A stretch of 64,000 nucleotides of DNA. It comes from Amoebophrya sp. A120. Its lineage: Eukaryota; Protista; Dinoflagellata. Within the stretch, counting starts at the first letter, position 1. Each line of letters starts with the position of its first letter. A program made the translations under genes and the position numbers. The stretch lies in assembly GCA_905178155.1 (NCBI GenBank), contig CAJINV010000001.1, positions 9,445,865-9,509,864 of the forward strand. Reading direction: 5' to 3'. The notes below the pieces were generated by a model that ran no database searches, was not told the origin of the DNA, and saw nothing but the letters and a program-made list of their open reading frames with translations. Positions 13,459 through 24,152 of this stretch are shown piece by piece.

Positions 13459-16400
13459 ATGCCGTCGCAAGTAGAGCGCGGACATCACGGAGGCACTGTA
13501 TGCGTAGCGCGAATCCATGCACTTTTTCCGATCACCAGCGAGTTCCTGGTCAAACTTCAGTGCAACTTGGGGCTAGTTCTGACAGCCAAATGCGAACAGG
13601 CCAGTTCGTGCAACTCGGTCTTCCCGTTCACGGCGCTTCTCCGTTGTGATCTCAGAAACTGGAGAATTTCAAAGCACGAGTCCACCCCGAGCTCTGCCGA
13701 GAACAATGGCGGTTTCGCCTTTTTCCAACACCTTGCTGATGCCGCCAACACGTTGTTTCTTCGAGAAACAGAATCGCTGCTTCGCAGGCGTGAAGCTCTC
13801 CAGGACAGCAGAGTGGAAAAGTTTGATACGTCGGGAGAAAATTCCTTTGCTGGAGGTGGTGCAGGAGCTACTGGTACAGTTGCTTCAGCGACCACAAAGG
13901 CAAACATATCCGGACCGTATGTGCCAGGGAGGCGGCAGTACGTCTGGGTGTCTGATGAATCGGGGCAGGTGCAGCTTTCTTCCGTCGATGGCCCAGCTGT
14001 TCCAGGTGGGTTTGTATCTAGCTACGAAGGTGCACCACATACGTGCACAGGAGGCGGTCGAAAGAAAAAAGGACAGAATTGGTTTGAGCTTACCAGCCCG
14101 CTAAGTGTTGGATACCTGACGTCGACATGTGACTACATCGAGTCTCGCCCCCCTCCGGGCGACGCGAAAAGAGGCGAACATCAGAAAAGCGCGCTCTGTT
14201 TCAACAACAGTTGCGTTGCATGGCTTTCGCCCACTTCTCCGCAAATCAGGATTTCCTTTCGGCTTGCGACGCATTGCTACAACGACTCGGAGCCCTTTTT
14301 GAGACCGCGAAAAGCTGCTCTGTCGGGCCGCTTCCTTGACGCCGCGGATGGCGGTAAGTCACCGCAGGAGAAGGGCTGGCTCAAAAAGATTACTGGATTA
14401 TTTTCGTCTTTCTCTCCTGAAACAGACGAGGAGGAGGGCCGACGTCTGCAAGAAGACGGTACGGGAGCCGGCATAGGTGGTGGAGAGGACGACGAACAGG
14501 ATCTTCCGTTTTGGAGCATTATCGAAATGCGTGATGTAGTCGCGGCGTTTACTGGATCGTCAGAACAAGTGATCGGCGAACGTCGTGGTGCCACGAAAAC
14601 GAATAAGAAAACCACCACCAGGGCGGGAGGATACGAACTCGTGCTGGTCCTGCGGCGACCGCCGGACTTTCTGTACGAGGTGCAAGTCAAGGAGAAGACG
14701 AAAAAGATGCCCGCTTGCTTAGGGGAGGAGTTTTCTTTTTTTTTCGGACAGAATTTCTGTTATCGGCTGGAATTATCGTCGCATGCTGAACTTCTAGCCG
14801 TTATCCAAGTCCTGCGGCAGAACCTAGTCCTGATTTTGTGCGGTGCGTCATCATTGGCGAAATCTCCAAAACTCCCGTCATCGTCCACTGTCGGAAACAC
14901 GACGGACAGCTGTGCAACGCTTGCCCCTTGTTCCAGAGAAAATGATTTCGACCTGCTCGAGGGTGATGTGGAAACGCAGTGGGTGTACGCGGAGCTTCGC
15001 TCGGAATACCCTTGGCTTGCACCGCAAATCCAAGCCGCCCTTCTACACATCAACCTCAATAATTCGAACCTGTCGTCCCACGACGAACAGATGAAGCACC
15101 TCCTGTCGATATCCACAAGTAGCACTCCTCCTGGTGTTGGGTTATTTCCGTCGTGCGTTGCCGTCGACTGGGAGAAGTACTTTACTCTGGCGCGAGCAGT
15201 CGAGCAATACTTGATAGCTTTTTTTGGAGGTTCTTGCACCTCCTCCGGACGCATCGTCGATCTGTCGCAGCGCATTTTTTCCGTGTACCCACCAGGCGCG
15301 GCGTGTACCCAGGAGCACGAACAAGATCACACTTCGACTCCAGATCTAGGCATGGGTGATGGACCGCGACCATCTCATGATATGTGTCACGAGCACGACA
15401 CGTCACCGTCAGGCTCTGCAAGAGGTATTGCGCAGCTAAATTCGAGAAGCTTTCGTTCGGCTGAAGCGGACGAGCGACTCTCGGCGTTGCCGGATGCCGA
15501 CAGCGCATGGACACTCGGAGTCGTGATCACACCGACAAGAGTTCTGTTCGGACCGCCACAGGCCATGCTGGCGAACCGTTTGCTGCGAGAATATGGAGAC
15601 CGCGTTTCTTTCCTTCGTGTGAGTTTCTGCTCGGAAAATCTGGACGAACTAAACGACGCGGAACAGCTAAACGAATGCATCAGCCGTGTATTCGAGGGCG
15701 GAATCAGAATCGGCTCCCGGCGGTACCGGCTTCTAGGGTGGAGCAACTCGCAAATGCGGGGCCGCTCGTGCTGGTTTTACCACAGTGCTTCCGTGACCGT
15801 GGACCAGATTCGACGCTGGGTGGGGAACCTAGACGCCGTGTACGCAAAGGGCGGGATTGCGAAGTACGCCAGTCGTCTGGCCTTGGCGTTCTCCAGCAGT
15901 CGGCCGACGGTGCGAGTTTCGCGGAGTGCTCTTGCCACGCTCCCGGACGTAGAACGGAACGGGTTCTGCTTCACCGACGGTAGCGGCCAAATTACGCTCT
16001 CGTTCGCACGGCTACTCGCAGAAAAGTTGCAACTTCCGTCCTTTTTGCAACAGCATCCTCCCAGCGCGTATCAGATCCGGTTTGGCGGCGCCAAGGGTGT
16101 GCTAGTGGTGAATCCGTCTCTGCCGGATGGCGGATGCCACCCGCAAATCTACTTGCGGCCCAGTCAGGTGAAGTTCGAATCCGAGTACTCCATGATGGAG
16201 GTGCTCAGCTATGCGAAGCCGACCGACTGCTACCTGAATCAGCAAATTGTGCTCCTACTTTGCTCCTGTCGGGTGCCCGAGCAGGCGTTTCTGCGGGTTG
16301 TGGAGCGTGGGCTGGAGGAAAAGGCGCGGACGCTACTCGAACCGCTTGCGTCCGCGGCCTACCTTCGCCGGGTAGGCTTTAACATTCCTGCCAGCGCTGT

Positions 16401-18861
16401 CTCCGACGCACAGGGCGGCTTTGATCCGCTCGTAGAACCATTTTTCTCAAGGCTGCTGCAAAACCACTACCGGGCCGAAGCACGCAAGATTCGCAAACGG
16501 ACAGCGGTGCGCGTGGCTAAGGGCAGAACTCTTTTGGGCATTCCTGATGACTTCGGTGTTCTGCGGGAAAACGAGGTGTTTGTGCGGATCACCAAACCTG
16601 ACCATCTGCGGCCACATGAAGCGAGCGCGGTCGAGCACATTGACGGGCCGCTCTCAGCTTGCGAGGTAATTCGCGGACCTGTAACGGTGACGAAGAATCC
16701 ATGCCTTCACCCCGGCGACATACGCCTCCCAACTGCCGTGGATGGAGAAGAAGTGAGGCAAAAGCTCGGCCATTTGCGGGACGTCGTCGTGTTCTCGACC
16801 GAGGGGGACCGGGACATGCCCAACAAAATCGCGGGATCGGATCTGGATGGTGACATGTATCACGTTTGCTGGGAGCCCTCGTTGCGCCCACAAGTCATCC
16901 ACGACCCAATGGACTATTCGGAAAGTACCAACGAGCCGCTGCGGCCCGACGAGGATGAGACATTAGAGGACCAGCTGCGGGAGTACTTCAAACGCTCCTG
17001 CTCTAGCGCCTCCCTCGGCCAGATTGCAAACGCCCACAAGGTCTTCGCCGACATGGAAGGTGCGGAATGTAAAAAGTCGCTCGCACTTGCGCGGTGCCAC
17101 TCCGATGCAGTGGACTTTCCAAAAACCGGCGTTCCGGCCCAGGTGCCCGATGATTGTCGTCCGAAAGAATGGCCTGACTTCATGGAGAAAACGGACAAAG
17201 TCACGGTACACCGCGACACAACGCTCCAAAAATGCACCGATATCTGCCCACGATGCCCTGAGGAGATCGAGCTTCCAGAAGAGGAAATGGAAGAGCCTGC
17301 GAGTTCCACCGACCCAACCGAGGAAAAAGTAGATGTAGAAGACGTTGATGAACGACACAATCACGAACACGAGCGCCAATCCAACTCTCCGGACGGCAAG
17401 AAGAATACTCCCCTTGGAACGACCACGCCGTCACCCTTGCAAGTGATCGAGAGCAAGAGTAGCCGCGATAACACGAAATCGCCGGCAGATGAAGCAGCAT
17501 CCGCTGAACAAGCGAGGATCCAGAAGCAGCGCGCAAAGTACTACTTCGGCCGACGCGGCATCCAGGTTGACCGGCAGTTTCTGTACCCGGGGTATTCGGA
17601 ACACCTGAATACAGCGGAAGCCTACTACCAGATGTACGAGCAAGAGGTAATGCAGATTCTTCGCGTGTTTCGCCTGCGCCACGAAGCCGAGCTTTTTGAC
17701 CATGCCAATCCAAGGGACGGGATTTCTCGGCGGGAAAGACACAAGTTAAAGGACGTGCTCCGGGCACGTGTGCGTCAGCTGAGGAATAAGTTTCTCGATG
17801 CGTTTCACGACATCTCTGAACACCTGGCCGGCATCGATGCCGCGGTGAGCCTGCACCTGTCTGAAACAGCTACCGCATCGGAGAGTCCGACGCAGACCGC
17901 GAAACGGCGCCAGGACGTACAGCAGTCGCTTGTCGTGGACGTGCGACGCAAACGGGCTGCAGCCTGGTACTTCGTAGCGTATAAGAATAGGCTTTGGGCC
18001 GCCGGGAAGAAGCGGAACCTTCTGAGTTTTGGTTGGATCGGCGCTGAGTTCTTGTTGCAGAATTGGTGCGCGAACAAAACGGCTGTCGCGACGTTACGCA
18101 CACGGCAACTGACCTACATCCATGCGGGCATCGCGGGTAGCCTGCTCGACGTCTGGGCACGAGGGAATCTTTGTCAGGGCTGGAAGAATGTTTTGTCAGG
18201 TTTTATCTCGGAGCTGCACCAGAAAACTTCGCTCCGAGTGCAGACCGTGTACAGCAGTCTCTTCGGTTCTTTCTTTAGCCACAATCGCGACCGCGTGGCA
18301 CCAGCAGAGCTGTCGAGACCAGCTATCCTACTTGCCGTTTCTCCCTCTACTGGACTGCAGGGCGAGGATATCCGCAAACAAGCTCTGGCACAGCTTCAGC
18401 GTCTTGACCCAACGGCACATCAGGAACCGTTAGACAATGCCGCTTTTCGTCTTCCGAAAATCAATTGCGGGGTGACTCTCGCGAAGTCCGCCGTCGGTCT
18501 AAACAACGTGGGTCACGTGCTTGCGCGCCTTCTTCTAAACCACCCTGCGGGCTCCCACGTTCCAGTACTAGCTCAGACTATCGCTGTGTGGGCTACGACC
18601 CTACGTTTGCTCTCTGCAGACGAGGTGTGGTTTCTGTTTCTGGTGCTGCTCTTCACCGCCGCGGACCACGCTGGGACAGAAGACGCCATCGGCCCCGCCC
18701 TTCTCACTGAGAACGATCTGACGGAGCACTCCAACGAAATACAGGCATTCGCGGCGAAGTTGGAGCACCATGAGAAAACCATCGCAGCATATGAACGGCG
18801 GTCATCCCCAAGTAGTACAAATGAAAATGGCGATGTTAATGAACAAGCTGCTAGTGCTGAT
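13459..18861 (+). CDS. Eukaryotic cellular RNA-dependent RNA polymerase (RNAi RdRP); probably the N-terminal exon of a larger fusion gene
   Basis: LGWSNSQMR, FTDGSG, PSAYQIRFGGAKGVL, KNPCLHPGDIR, catalytic GSDLDGD, AVDFPKTG, PDFMEK. The ORF's final residues (VTKCVRARAQ...) are read-through into the TIR element starting at 18863. Start codon uncertain. Confidence 0.93.
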
Positions 18862-18862
18862 C

Positions 18863-19944
18863 TGGTAACCAAATGCGTGCGCGCGCGCGCGCAGAGCGCG
18901 CGCCGGCCCACGAAGCCGGCGCGCGCGCTCTGCGCGCTTGCGATATTGCTTAGCAAACGCAGCGCGAAGGCAGTTGCCGTTACCATATAGGGCAACCGCC
19001 GGGAGGCGTGAAGGTCAGGGAAATGGCCAGAAATGAAGCGGGAGAAGGGAAAAAAAGTGGACCAGATGGGAAAATGGCCAGGAGGTCAAAAATGTCGCAA
19101 AAACGGCAGAAACCAAGCGGGAGAAGGTGCAAAAAGAGCATTTTTGCGGTTTGGCCCACTTGATATCTGAAAAAGAGACGGACTGTTTTTTGCTCCGCCC
19201 GCTGGCCAGCTGCGTTGGAGAAGCAGGCCCGCGACCTGTCCGGAAGCCTTGGGCCGCTTGATACGTGAAAAAAGTTGGAAAAAAATGACAAAAAATTGCT
19301 TCATAACGTGGGTGGAAGCAATCGTCGGATTTTGTGCAGATCACCCGGGCCACTTGAGAAGTGAAAAAAGATGAGAAATTGCGCAAAAGCCCAATCCCTC
19401 CGCAGGCTTCGAAATTGCCAGTCAGCTGCGGTCGGTGAAAATGTGCAGGTCCCCCGGGCCACTTAGAAACCAGAAAAAAACGCGAAAATTAAAAGAAATC
19501 GAGAACCCCCGGCAGGCTTAGAAACTGGCCACCAAGGGCGGTCCGGCGGGCGCGCGCTTGCGCCGTACCATCGCGATTGGGAAAAAAAAACCGCACTAGA
19601 AGCGGGCGGAGGGATGTCACAAAATCCCTGTTTGCCCGGGGTTGGGGGCACAAATTCGGCACCTCCGCCGCGTCTGAAATGCCCGATTTTGGTGGCCCGG
19701 AAGGGTCCGCGGATATTCGGCTTTCCACATACCTTCTTGGCCAGGGGGCCAGTTTGTCATGCAGGGGGCTAGAAAGGATGCCCCGCTGCGAAATAGCAGA
19801 CCGGATTTCGCCTTCAATGCTTATCGCAGGAGCCTGCGGGCCGCCGCGGGCGACAGTAGTTGTCCGCGGCCCTTTAGGGCCGCGGGGAAGTGGTGGAGCC
19901 CGCTTTCGCGCTGGTTAGATTTTCGCGCACGCATTTGGTTACCA
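18863..19944. mobile_element. 1,082-bp TIR element, probable non-canonical intron (TGGTAACC...GGTTACCA)
   Basis: Perfect 21-bp inverted repeats TGGTAACCAAATGCGTGCGCG (18863-18883) and CGCGCACGCATTTGGTTACCA (19924-19944). Internal GC hairpins and ~100-bp-period repeats. No credible coding ORF. Removing the element plus 1 nt joins the RdRP and helicase frames. Confidence 0.85.
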
Positions 19945-22900
19945 ATATCGCCCTCCGGGCGCGATCTTCATACGAGCAGTCGGTCAGTCAACCCCGTAAG
20001 CCTGGCCGAAATGTGGCTCTCCTTTCTGACCACCCTTGCGCGACTTTCGGACAGTGATGAATTGGTGCAGCGCGAAGCAGATGCAAACGCGACACGAAAC
20101 GATGAAACGCCTGTGGGTGCCAGGACACACGACACTGTGTCGACAAAGGAGCTTGACAAAATCGGCAATTATGTTCAGGCGCAGGGATTGCAGGATTTGT
20201 TCGACAAGAGTTGGCCGTGGTGGAAGCAGAACTGCAACAAGTGTTGTAGCCCCGCCTCTTCTGGAAGACTTAGAGTTCGGCTTCGGTTTCGCGAGGAAGC
20301 GAAGGTACATCGAGCAGCAGTTCGCGCGAAACAGCAAGCCCTCGCTGACCAGTCGATCCTGATGGAGCCAGGAGATCACCACTACAAGCGTTTCGTGTTC
20401 CGAAAGCCACGACCCGAGGAGTACGATCTACTTATTCAGCAAGTAAAAAGCGCAGCCGCGCCCGGTCGAGTGCTTGAAGCGATGCCGTCTCGGCACGGTG
20501 ACAGTCTTGTCATCTCCGTGCGAGCCCCGCGCGCACAGCTCCTCAATGTCACGGAAATGCACTTTCGCGTGGAGCGCAAGCCGTCTGCGCGCAGCGCCAT
20601 CGCTCTACGGGAGAGCGACCCTTTCGTAAGCTCGGCCGATTTGTATCGGGAACGCCAAGTCCTGCGCGAAACCGTGCGGGCTAACCCGGTAACCATCATT
20701 GACTCGGAGACGGGATCGGGGAAAACGTCTTTGGTGCCGCTTCTGCTAGCCGCTGAGGAAGGTCAAGGGGAGCTACGTCGCGTTCTTTGCACCCAGGTTT
20801 ACAAATTGTGTAACAAGCTATGGCTCTTGTCCCAAGTGGCAATGGTCTCTTGCTTTTTTTGAAGGCTAAACTCGCCGGAGCTGTTGCATTTATGTTTTTC
20901 TTTTTTGTGTACGTCTACGTGTACAAGAAATGCAAGACCAAGTAGATAACTCTATAAGTACACCACGAATGCCAGGTTCGCCGAATTGCTACGGAGTCGG
21001 CAGCGCTCCGCGCAGTAGATCTTACGCACTCCGCCGAACTAGGTCGGGACATTGGATATCAGATCGGCGGGAAGAGTCTCGTCGGTAGAGGAACATCGAT
21101 CGTCTATTGTATTGACGCCATTGCCATGATGACGGCCCTGCAGGACGGGTGCACACTGGGCTACACGCACGTGATTGTGGACGAAGTTCACACTAGAACA
21201 CACTACACCGATCTGTTGCTCGCCGCACTGAAGCACTTTCACCTTTGCAAGAGCCCGCACCTCCGCATCGTCATTATGTCGGCCAGTGCAGACACGGGGC
21301 GGATGGCAGCGTACTTTCAAACAACCACGGGAAAGCCCGCGGCAATTTTTCGCTCATCTTCAGGCCAACGATTCCCGATCGAAGAGAGATACTTGGACGA
21401 TATCCGCAACGGGACAAAGGCAGACGGCGATCCTGGAAGGCAACTGTATTCGGCGTCGGTGCACAATGTGGGTGCAAAACTCCCACCGTTTTGGTATTTT
21501 CTGGAATGGGTAGACAGACTTCTTGCAAAGAAGGTGATCAAGAAAAACTCTCGGGTCCTAGTTTTCCTTCCCGGGCGACGCGAGATCGACGAGTGCGCGC
21601 ACTTCCTGCGATTTTTGAACGGCACGCACGTCGCAACACTGTTTGGCGGGGTCCCAGTGGAGCAGCAACACGAGATCATCCGAGACTTGCCGACAAACGC
21701 GCCCGCTTTCATACTCGCGACCGACGTGGTCGAGACGAGCGTGACCATCGCAGACTGCGATCATGTGATCGATTTTTGCCGACACAAGCGGCTCCGCGAA
21801 CAACCGGGGTCGGTGCAGCCGCAGCTCACCCTGGAACTGATCGCGCAGGCCGAGGCCAAGCAGCGGAAGGGCCGCACCGGTCGGACCACGCCCGGTACCG
21901 TGCACCGTCTGGTGACGAAGGCGCAGTGGGAACGGCTACTGGAGTTCCCGGAGCCAGAGATTCAGTCTATGCGCGTCGCGGACGTCCTGCTGATGCTGCA
22001 AGACCTTCTTCCCAACTCGCTGGATCCGCGCACTTTCCTCACCGATTCGCAGTATCTTTTGAGTCCGATCAACAAGAAGGGCGTCGACCAAGGCTATCAG
22101 GCTTTGGAAGAGGCGGGCGCGTTTTTGCTGTCCAAGACCGGAAGCCGGCGTGGCGTCTCATCGCTTGGGCGGCTGATGACGGAACTCTACACGGACATCG
22201 AGTATGTGCAGCTCGTCGTGAATGGCCTGCACTTCGGTCTCGTCGCCGACGCGGTCCTCCTCGCCGCGGTGTTGCGTCACGGGAGTCCTTTTCTCGAGGA
22301 CAGCATCATCGAAGCACCGGCCGAGCGGGTCCGCCTCATCCACCTAAAGCGCGCCTGCTGCGCATTCTCGAGTGACGTTCTGCACCGCTGGGGCGCGGTG
22401 AAAGCCTGGCGGCAGTACAATCTCGAGCGGTGGCGGTGGCGAAACGAGCGATCTCGTTTCGAGCAAACAAACTCACGGTCACTCCCCAGCAAAACTCAAG
22501 TAGAAGCACCATCGGCAACGACAGGACCGCCGAATCTGCCGTCTCGGAAACATACTACGCAAGAGCAGCACAACTCAGCGAGTCTTTTCGCAGCGGCAAG
22601 GAACAACCCAGGCTCCCGAACAGCAACTGGAGTGGGAGACCAGATGCCGTCGAAGCCTGCGCTGGAGTTTCAAATACCCAAGACGCACACCACTTCCTAC
22701 CGTGAGTGTCCCCTTCCCAGCTTCACAGACGCAGACTTAGCCGAGGAACTTGCCTGGTGTCGACTGCATTCAATCGACAACTCCAAGATGCGCGAAATCG
22801 AGGACACGGCGCGTCAGTTCTACGATGCTCTTATTAAGGTTGGATTTATCTCCGAGGCCGATTTTGAGGAGATGTTCGGGAAGCCGAATGTGCGAGCGGC

Positions 22901-24152
22901 TCTGCAGAAACGCAGTGCGAAGGGTCAGCGTGTACTCCAACGCACCGGCCAGCAACTCACCCAGCAGCACCAAGACATGCTACGATTTGTCAGAAGACAA
23001 GGAAGGACTGCAGCCGAAACGATACCCATCGACGACCCATACACGGCGATATTCATCGGGCACCCGCTGGCAAAAATTGCGCGAACGGGATGTAGCGAAA
23101 ACAGCATCTTCCAGTCTAGTTTCTCGCTCCTGCGCAAACGTGCTTGCATAGAAGAGCGCACTCGTCTAGGCAGCACCTCCGGCAGAGAAGACGCAACATG
23201 GAAACGCGTTCAATCACTACAAAACCACGAAAAACTTTTGCTGTGGCTCCTGGCTTCCAGTTATTTGCCAAATCTGCTCGGCTCGCAGGGAAGCCGCAAC
23301 AATCGCGAGGTGACATTCGAGCTGCGCAAGCAGGCGCGCCGTGGAGAGTACCAGCAAAGGCACGCAGAAGAGCAGTTGGTGCATGTTTTGCGCGCCGCAA
23401 ATCTCAGTGTCGCGGAAAATCTGGGGGAGGGCACCGTCCGGTTCGTGGACTCGGAGACGACGCACACGGCGCGACAGTTCCGAGATACGAAGGTTTTCAC
23501 GCGCGTGGAAGTCGACACCAGTGTGAAAAGCAAGAGACAATGCTACCCGGGCGAGGTGATCCTCGGTCACGACACCTGTTGCGAACTCTCCGGAGAGCAG
23601 CTCCTGATTGCCGCAGTGATGATTCCTGTTGCTGGTGGGCGATTTTTGGCTCGGGAGCTCTCGGCCCTGCCACACGCCGACATGGCAAACGCACTGGTAG
23701 CCGCCATGCACCCAGCATTTGGTGATGCCTCTTCTGCATTTGTGTCGTTCAAGGGCGTTTCCGAAACAATCATGTGCGATGTCACACTGTTTACCCCCGC
23801 AGCGAAGCTTCGGAAGAGCCTTCAGGGGCACGCAAATCTGGCCGAGCGAAACCTGTCCGCTGCAACCGTGACCGAAAGAAGGGCTCTGGTGCTGGAAATC
23901 TGGCAGGAGTGTGAGGCACGGCAGAAGCGCGCACAGCTGAAACCGCAGACAGTGACTCGCTGCATTACCGTGCCAGCTGGCAAGAAAGGGTTTGTCATCG
24001 GAAAGGGAGGGGCAAATCTGCGTTCCATCCAAGACCTCAGCGGCGCCAGAGTCAAAATGCCACCGAAAGGCGATCCCTCGGAAAACGTCATGGTGTCAGG
24101 AACGTCCACACAGGTCGACGAGGCGATAAGGCTGATCGAGAACAAACTGTAA
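19945..24152 (+). CDS. DEAH/RHA-type SF2 RNA helicase with HA2 and C-terminal KH domain; exons 19945..20796 and 20976..24152; likely continuous with the RdRP
   Basis: Motif I SETGSGKT; Ia CTQ|VRRIA across GT-AG intron 20797..20975; GYQIG; II DEVH; III MSAS; IV VFLPG; V ATDVVETSVTI; VI QRKGRTGR; KH domain GFVIGKGGANLRSIQDLSGARV. Confidence 0.92.

Follow-up and report, generated by a model that had tools for sequence, protein, structure and literature searches.

An apparently conserved RdRP-DEAH helicase-KH fusion gene of parasitic myzozoans, probably carrying an introner in its linker in Amoebophrya sp. A120

The subject of this work is a locus of Amoebophrya sp. A120, lying at positions 13459 to 24152 of a 64,000-nucleotide stretch of contig CAJINV010000001.1 that we refer to as the window (G000:C1:9445865-9509864, in the 115.5-Mb, 401-contig A120 assembly). 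The locus encodes an RNA-dependent RNA polymerase (RdRP), a linker, a helicase and a KH domain, and it is quite likely the form that an old fusion gene of parasitic myzozoans takes in A120, with an introner in the linker. What is new here is a conserved RdRP-DEAH-KH fusion family, interrupted in A120 by an introner that is removed, as far as documented, at the cost of the reading frame. The protein of that old gene would have run from a cellular-type RdRP through a linker of low conservation to a DEAH/RHA helicase, with a KH domain at its C-terminus; in A120 the linker would now contain an introner of 1,110 nt, one of many copies in the genome, bounded by terminal inverted repeats (TIRs), and the 1,141-nt junction would end the RdRP-linker protein at a TAA placed 11 nt ahead of the ATG of the helicase-KH frame. 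An earlier note on this DNA, made from the sequence alone, had read the locus as a single polypeptide. The RdRP-DEAH-KH architecture in it proved to be real and conserved in the lineage, but in A120 the sole RNA-supported junction separates the two open reading frames (ORFs).

The same domain order is found in two other parasites. The transcriptome shotgun assembly of Hematodinium (GEMP01, organism taken from PMC6642578) holds a 2,564-aa protein, GEMP01000123.1.p1 (P0005), whose ORF is labelled complete by its source and which carries RdRP, DEAD, Helicase_C and KH_1 domains; the same four are present in KAH0487568.1, a 2,408-aa cluster member from Porospora cf. gigantea. Half for half, and in the same order, no other A120 sequence matches the Hematodinium fusion as well as this locus: searched with that protein, the A120 genome gave its two best matches in the window, colinear and on one strand, the RdRP scoring 352 bits and the helicase 225, with the next-best A120 helicase at 151 bits. 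Exon 3 and the Hematodinium helicase half share 35% identity over 494 aa, and their colinearity extends over a WC..H..SK..EIE block and takes in the KH domain. Judged from these predicted proteins, the joining of RdRP, DEAH helicase and KH in one polypeptide is a conserved architecture of this lineage, and the fusion gene is very probably ancestral. The domain-architecture search suggested in the earlier note thus turned up the fusion in both Hematodinium and Porospora, and the orthologs are not always encoded as separate genes. Both came from one HMMER scan with the RdRP and the linker, which covered 1.84 billion representative proteins. Two metagenome scans returned no relatives, and in the literature we found no description of the RdRP-DEAH-KH architecture or of the Hematodinium and Porospora proteins.

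Further evidence comes from the gene models of Amoebophrya AT5.2. The N-terminus of exon 1 aligns with the start of the AT5.2 RdRP model g9543.t1 (P0003), which ends, in A120 coordinates, about 29 aa before the model g14697.t1 (P0155) begins. The latter starts within the linker, its aa 1-47 aligning with exon 1 aa 1533-1579 (E 4e-8), and then continues into the helicase. Among the three frames that follow the A120 element, only the helicase frame is similar to AT5.2, a similarity that sets in with the very first codon past the element; read from 19975, this frame aligns best to AT5.2 aa 171-202, a match that includes residues upstream of the annotated helicase Met. At that Met, A120 reads ...SLAEMWLSFL and AT5.2 reads ...PLAEQWLAFL, so that a Gln takes the place of the A120 "start" and AT5.2 has no start codon there. 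As a side observation, g9543.t1 and g14697.t1 probably belong to a single gene that a break in assembly or annotation has divided. The A120 genome also holds a paralog on contig C3 (L019:1076-7033; G000:C3:3183075-3189032, + strand), an uninterrupted ORF of 1,985 aa with an RdRP domain at aa 130-605, DEAD at 1433-1602 and Helicase_C at 1757-1819, and with a linker made of an E/K/R-rich coiled coil of about 830 aa.

Within the locus, Pfam, motifs and PDB matches agree with the RdRP, DEAH and KH calls of the earlier note and with their coordinates. The RdRP profile PF05183 matches aa 690-1247 with 500.8 bits against a cut-off of 23.8, covering profile positions 1-561 of 582. The DxDGD loop, which is the catalytic motif of cellular RdRPs, is present as DLDGD at aa 1128-1132. 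In the helicase half, Pfam reports Helicase_C (E 2e-16) and KH_1 (E 8.3e-16, 57.9 bits), and the motifs GSGKT (Walker A), DEVH, SAS and QRKGRTGR follow one another in this order. The nearest solved relatives among PDB sequences are HrpA, DHX29, Prp22 and Spindle-E (E 3e-33 to 6e-30), and by its similarity to these four the helicase is assigned to the DEAH/RHA type. Pfam did not report HA2 or OB_NTP_bind in the helicase; the alignments with HrpA and Prp43 still extend past RecA2 to about aa 438-490. The KH domain is of type I, by its KH_1 profile match together with a GXXG loop (GKGG). The helicase-KH ORF as a whole is intact over 1,320 codons and keeps every motif.

The two halves are separated by an element bounded by a perfect 21-nt inverted repeat, for which the chance expectation is 0 matches. 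The stretch from TIR to TIR (1,082 nt) has at least 198 matches in the A120 genome, several per copy included, and the copies are 86-94% identical. When the ends of eleven copies were aligned, nine retained the right end, and in all nine the right TIR is followed by the same 28 nt, ATATCGCCCTCCGGGCGCGAyyTTCATA. The mobile unit in the window is therefore 18863-19972, or 1,110 nt. The earlier note had correctly recognised the perfect TIRs of an element at 18863-19944, but had set its right boundary 28 nt too early; because the tail is family-wide, the first nine residues that it had assigned to exon 2 (ISPSGRDLH) are element sequence. Directly before the left TIR stands xATC in 11 of 11 copies. 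The window copy has GATC to the left of the left TIR and A+TATC to the right of the right one (TATC beginning one nt after the TIR), and in two copies the border pair is a perfect TATC/TATC. No ordinary target-site duplication is visible at the borders of the eleven aligned copies. Inside the element lies a tandem unit of about 109 nt that varies in copy number, with three units in the window (19237-19525). A run of about 17 or more such units was seen on contig C21 (G000:C21:38943-40771).

In its TIRs, its repeated family, its short border direct repeats and its removal from mRNA, inexact and out of frame as this removal is, the element answers to the description of an introner. According to Farhat et al. 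2021 (PMC7789003), more than 60% of the introns are non-canonical in two strains, one of them A120; many such introns are introner elements, which are repeated, carry inverted and direct repeats and are spliced at sites that shift with respect to the hairpin. The xATC...TATC pair fits the direct-repeat layout given for A120 in the same paper.

The RNA evidence comes mainly from one sequencing run. Run X1 can be taken as RNA from its splicing of intron 2, and run X6 as DNA from its flat depth of about 43 and its collapsed repeats. In X1 the depth is about 5.4 upstream of the element and 7.1-7.9 downstream of it. One contig of this run, 1,235 nt long, spans the joint of intron 2, from 20792 to 20972 (cut +4). 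On the left of the element, record 3 of the X1 contigs follows the genome over 18167-18835, and its next 7 letters depart from it. The two window proteins have exact database matches from Amoebophrya sp. A120, CAD7926203.1 (GSA120T00005588001; P0002) and CAD7926204.1 (GSA120T00005587001; P0154). The first of these ends in ...STNENGD + AVGQSTP, where VGQSTP and the stop are the translation of 19979-19999; because of this C-terminus, the annotation must join 18835 to 19977 and remove 1,141 nt. Its annotated length is 523 aa, and it begins at an internal Met of a far longer ORF. The second is the helicase-KH protein, of 1,320 aa, which starts MWLSFL at ATG 20011. Across the element, where the earlier note had proposed an RNA check, the sole junction in RNA-based data, 18836-19976, breaks the frame; the splicing of intron 2, further downstream, was confirmed in X1.

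A second copy of the element, on contig C15 (L012:603-2483; G000:C15 ~910102-911982), lies inside a minus-strand gene, and X1 contains both unspliced and junction forms of it. The C15 junction, GT(AACC)...(AA)CT, begins 2 nt within one TIR and reaches 19 nt past the opposite one, and it is out of frame with a downstream ORF of more than 200 codons. Both RNA junctions seen for the element family are therefore imprecise and frame-breaking. Two further RNA runs, X10 and X11 (2026, same species label), gave no read that matched window 17300-22300 at 95% identity, which may reflect another strain or little parasite RNA in the sample.

It is worth setting out the frame arithmetic, since the single-polypeptide reading of the earlier note was built on it. 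The ORF that opens at ATG 13459 runs to a stop at 18988-18990; it is open at 18861 and beyond, and runs without a stop up to the element, as that note had said. The frame beginning at 19945 is open through 20796, and the exon sizes given earlier (5403 + 852 + 3177) are correct. Removing 18862-19944 (1,083 nt), that is, the element plus 1 nt, puts the RdRP frame in register with the helicase frame. The arithmetic of this "element + 1 nt" removal is sound, but it has no RNA support, the sole RNA-based junction being out of frame. The same phase relation is found more widely: at 8 of 9 copies, the flanking ORF phase fits the removal of the element (E) plus 1 nt, modulo 3. The relation arises at copies in ORFs because 28 equals 1 modulo 3 and the mobile unit is E+28; it traces back to the 28-nt tail of the element and not to the position of the RNA cut. 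The use of ORF phase as proof of E+1 splicing was accordingly rejected, since insertion geometry alone yields the phase and is silent on where the RNA is cut. By arithmetic, three junctions are in frame: 18861/19945 (that of the earlier note), 18862/19973 (exact excision) and 18835/19976 (one more G). The last would read ...GATG/GCAGTCGG, with two G, and is in frame, while ...GATG/CAGTCGG, with one G, is out of frame; a junction on the direct-repeat model, 18862/19950, is out of frame as well. A single ORF of about 3,120-3,140 codons would return if the element were cut out exactly, or if the length removed were any multiple of 3 nt. The coordinates of all parts are collected in Table 1.

Table 1. 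Parts of the RdRP-linker-helicase-KH locus, in window positions
Feature	Positions	Strand	Remarks
Exon 1: N-terminal region, RdRP domain and linker	13459..18835	+	18835 is the last base retained by the RNA-based junction
RdRP catalytic domain PF05183	15526..17199	+	Pfam E 7.8e-150; DLDGD motif 16840-16854
Linker, about 554 aa, including the proposed "dead NTase"	17200..18861	+	SSLFGS 18253-18270, AFRLPKIN 18442-18465, WFLFLVLL 18628-18651
Copy of the TIR introner-like element, 1,110 nt	18863..19972	+	TIRs 18863-18883 and 19924-19944, tail 19945-19972
Intron of the public A120 annotation, fitting the RNA contig	18836..19976	+	1,141 nt, TT..AG (GT..GA on a shift of one G); helicase frame not kept
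TAA closing the RdRP-linker frame after the RNA-supported splice	19997..19999	+	C-terminus of the annotated protein
Exon 2: pre-helicase region and helicase motif I	19973..20796	+	GSGKT 20713-20727; ATG 20011 is the annotated helicase start
Second intron, canonical GT-AG, 179 nt	20797..20975	+	Spliced out in RNA run X1
Exon 3: DEAH/RHA core, long C-terminal region, KH domain and stop	20976..24152	+	DEVH 21180-21191, QRKGRTGR 21861-21884
KH domain within exon 3	~23961-24140	+	GKGG 24000-24011; Pfam KH_1

Several observations weigh against the reading of the locus as one fusion gene. The 1,141-nt junction shifts the frame, so that the TAA falls 11 nt before ATG 20011, and the public transcript-based annotation has two genes here, CAD7926203.1 and CAD7926204.1. 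No in-frame junction is present among the X1 contigs listed, at a depth that is low (about 5-8), and the X1 junction of the second copy on C15 is likewise out of frame with the ORF downstream. The AT5.2 RdRP and helicase models bear distant gene numbers, their adjacency following only from the abutting sequence, and the linker is not conserved between Amoebophrya and Hematodinium or Porospora. We give the single chain in present-day A120 just under an even chance.

A serious competitor, if one we place somewhat below an even chance, is that A120 now makes two proteins: an RdRP-linker protein that ends ...NENGDAVGQSTP at the TAA, and the 1,320-aa helicase-KH protein read from ATG 20011, perhaps from a trans-spliced mRNA of its own, the introner insertion having split the old fusion gene. 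The two accessions are annotated as adjacent genes, the junction is out of frame, and the RdRP-side X1 contig leaves the genome at 18835; A120 has a Met where AT5.2 has a Gln, placed as a start codon 11 nt past the new stop, and an AG stands just upstream of the ATG, at 19999-20000. On the other side, the annotated models are fragments (CAD7926203.1, as said, begins at an internal Met), the helicase frame resembles AT5.2 upstream of the Met, and one extra G at the junction (18835/19976) or an exact excision would be in frame. Of the separate transcripts that the earlier note had named as telling against its single chain, the X1 data, at their low depth, show no spliced-leader or 5'-end evidence for a helicase mRNA.

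The earlier note had gone further and taken the linker for a catalytically dead nucleotidyltransferase (NTase) of the Cid1/terminal uridylyltransferase (TUTase) fold, straddling the element, so that the locus would be a single-chain RNA-directed RNA polymerase complex (RDRC). We regard this as unlikely. The strings on which it was based are there (SSLFGS; AFRLPKIN...GLNN...LL; NPVSLAEMWLSFL), but the resemblance is at the level of pattern and no statistical test supports an NTase identity. Its statement that SSLFGS lacks the DxD is right: FGS is present and no catalytic DxD follows, which leaves the TUTase motif incomplete. To the eye, the linker of Hematodinium shows a comparable pattern (RGSSALMLWRPADVVEL ... 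ALAQWC ... HPGAMFYNFFVHML), and that linker is probably a folded domain, because it is conserved with Porospora (E 1e-39).

The searches did not bear the NTase out. No Pfam match to NTP_transf_2, MTPAP-like, TUTase or PAP_assoc profiles was obtained at E<=10 in the linker and exon 2 of A120 or in AT5.2, Hematodinium and Porospora, whereas the same profiles detect four true Cid1-like loci in A120; a genome-wide scan with PAP_assoc (PF03828) found these four other loci and not that of the window. The linker has no PDB sequence match and no usable match in the ESM Atlas. With hhalign, the linkers gave a probability of 0.1% against the A120 Cid1-like enzymes, and nothing against one another except for A120 with AT5.2; the A120 linker is homologous only to that of AT5.2. 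A 7-row global alignment was dropped as a profile, its fragment rows being misplaced in the linker. The structure prediction proposed in the earlier note fared no better, with AlphaFold giving a mean predicted local distance difference test score of 43.2 from the single sequence and 34.6 from a 3-row alignment, too low for use. Moreover, the linker of the C3 paralog is a coiled coil, AT5.2 apparently goes without some 100 aa of the proposed domain, and the post-TIR residues that had been read as exon, ISPSGRDLH, belong to the element itself.

With the NTase not demonstrable, and with the RNA-supported junction parting the RdRP ORF from the helicase ORF, the single-chain RDRC of the earlier note finds no support. 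A role in small-RNA amplification would be an analogy drawn from other organisms. Six-frame profile searches of the A120 assembly gave no match to Piwi (PF02171), PAZ (PF02170) or RNase III (PF00636, PF14622) by which the gene could be placed in a small-RNA pathway, as that note had proposed; in a genome so rich in introns and so quick to evolve such negatives are weak, and they may reflect a true absence of Argonaute and Dicer, or else divergence and intron splitting. RdRP loci number at least eight in A120, and two have a DEAH helicase linked to them. The four stand-alone Cid1-like loci (L013-L016, at C9:1498705, C59:2667, C20:802217 and C11:778439), with MTPAP-like central, NTP_transf_2 and PAP_assoc domains, are candidate tailing partners of the A120 RdRPs. 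A joint reading, in which the RdRP-DEAH-KH enzymes form a myzozoan family outside canonical RNA interference and the A120 introner has split one fusion into two cistrons, is in our view improbable as a whole; in it, a frame-shifting non-canonical splice would make the stop, with the lineage-specific Met following 11 nt later.

That a transposon has simply disabled the gene, leaving the helicase half untranslated and the splice forms aberrant, would suit the frame-breaking junctions at two copies of the family but is very unlikely, since the helicase-KH ORF is intact over its 1,320 codons with all motifs in place, RNA contigs cover it at a depth similar to that of the RdRP half, and the 6-12% divergence among element copies suggests that the insertion is probably not very recent.

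If the locus is an old fusion gene as we propose, its parts suggest how such an enzyme might work. The RdRP would copy single-stranded RNA, the tethered DEAH motor, moving 3'->5', would feed or clear the template or release the product, and the KH domain would hold single-stranded RNA. A partner for 3'-tailing, if there is one, would more likely be a stand-alone Cid1-like enzyme than the linker.

Cellular RdRPs are normally paired with separate helicases and tailing enzymes. The RDRC of fission yeast, for example, is built from Rdp1, Hrr1 and Cid12, each a protein of its own, and Hrr1 is not known to be a DEAH/RHA helicase. The A120 locus is like the RDRC in pairing an RdRP with a helicase for RNA-templated synthesis; it differs in that the yeast proteins are separate, and in that A120 has no demonstrable NTase module and no Argonaute or Dicer detected by the six-frame profiles. 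For the helicase core, the best named matches are TDRD9/Spindle-E and the HrpA-type DEAH helicases. The identity is about 28-31% over some 40% of the query, and these proteins lack an RdRP; in place of KH they bear Tudor or HrpA-specific domains. A parallel in covalent form is found in Dictyostelium, where the helicase domain of the Rrp enzymes is Dicer-related. In RrpA, RrpB and RrpC a single chain unites a cellular RdRP with a helicase domain (PMC3661229), the helicase being N-terminal as the earlier note had stated; there the helicase precedes the RdRP, whereas in A120 the DEAH/RHA helicase and the KH domain come after it.

As for the element, it resembles the Amoebophrya introners already described (PMC7789003) in being a repeated element with TIRs, short border direct repeats, non-canonical boundaries and a variable position of the splice sites with respect to the hairpin. 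It differs from them in size, the element of 1,110 nt and its intron of 1,141 nt exceeding the 40-1000-nt introns analysed there, in the asymmetric 28-nt tail of its family, and in that both RNA junctions are out of frame. An Amoebophrya introner can thus occupy a large conserved gene, and its removal can decide between one protein and two.

The closest relatives of both halves outside Amoebophrya are the uncharacterised proteins of Hematodinium (GEMP01000123.1.p1) and Porospora cf. gigantea A (KAH0487568.1 / XP_067813817.1), in which RdRP, linker, DEAD/DEAH, Helicase_C and KH_1 follow one another as they do in A120. They are shorter, at 2,400-2,560 aa against about 3,130 aa in A120, and their linkers are not detectably similar to that of A120; we know of no introner in either. 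A covalent RdRP-DEAH-KH fusion, conserved across syndinian and gregarine parasites, would give a compact model for the coupling of template handling to RNA-templated synthesis.

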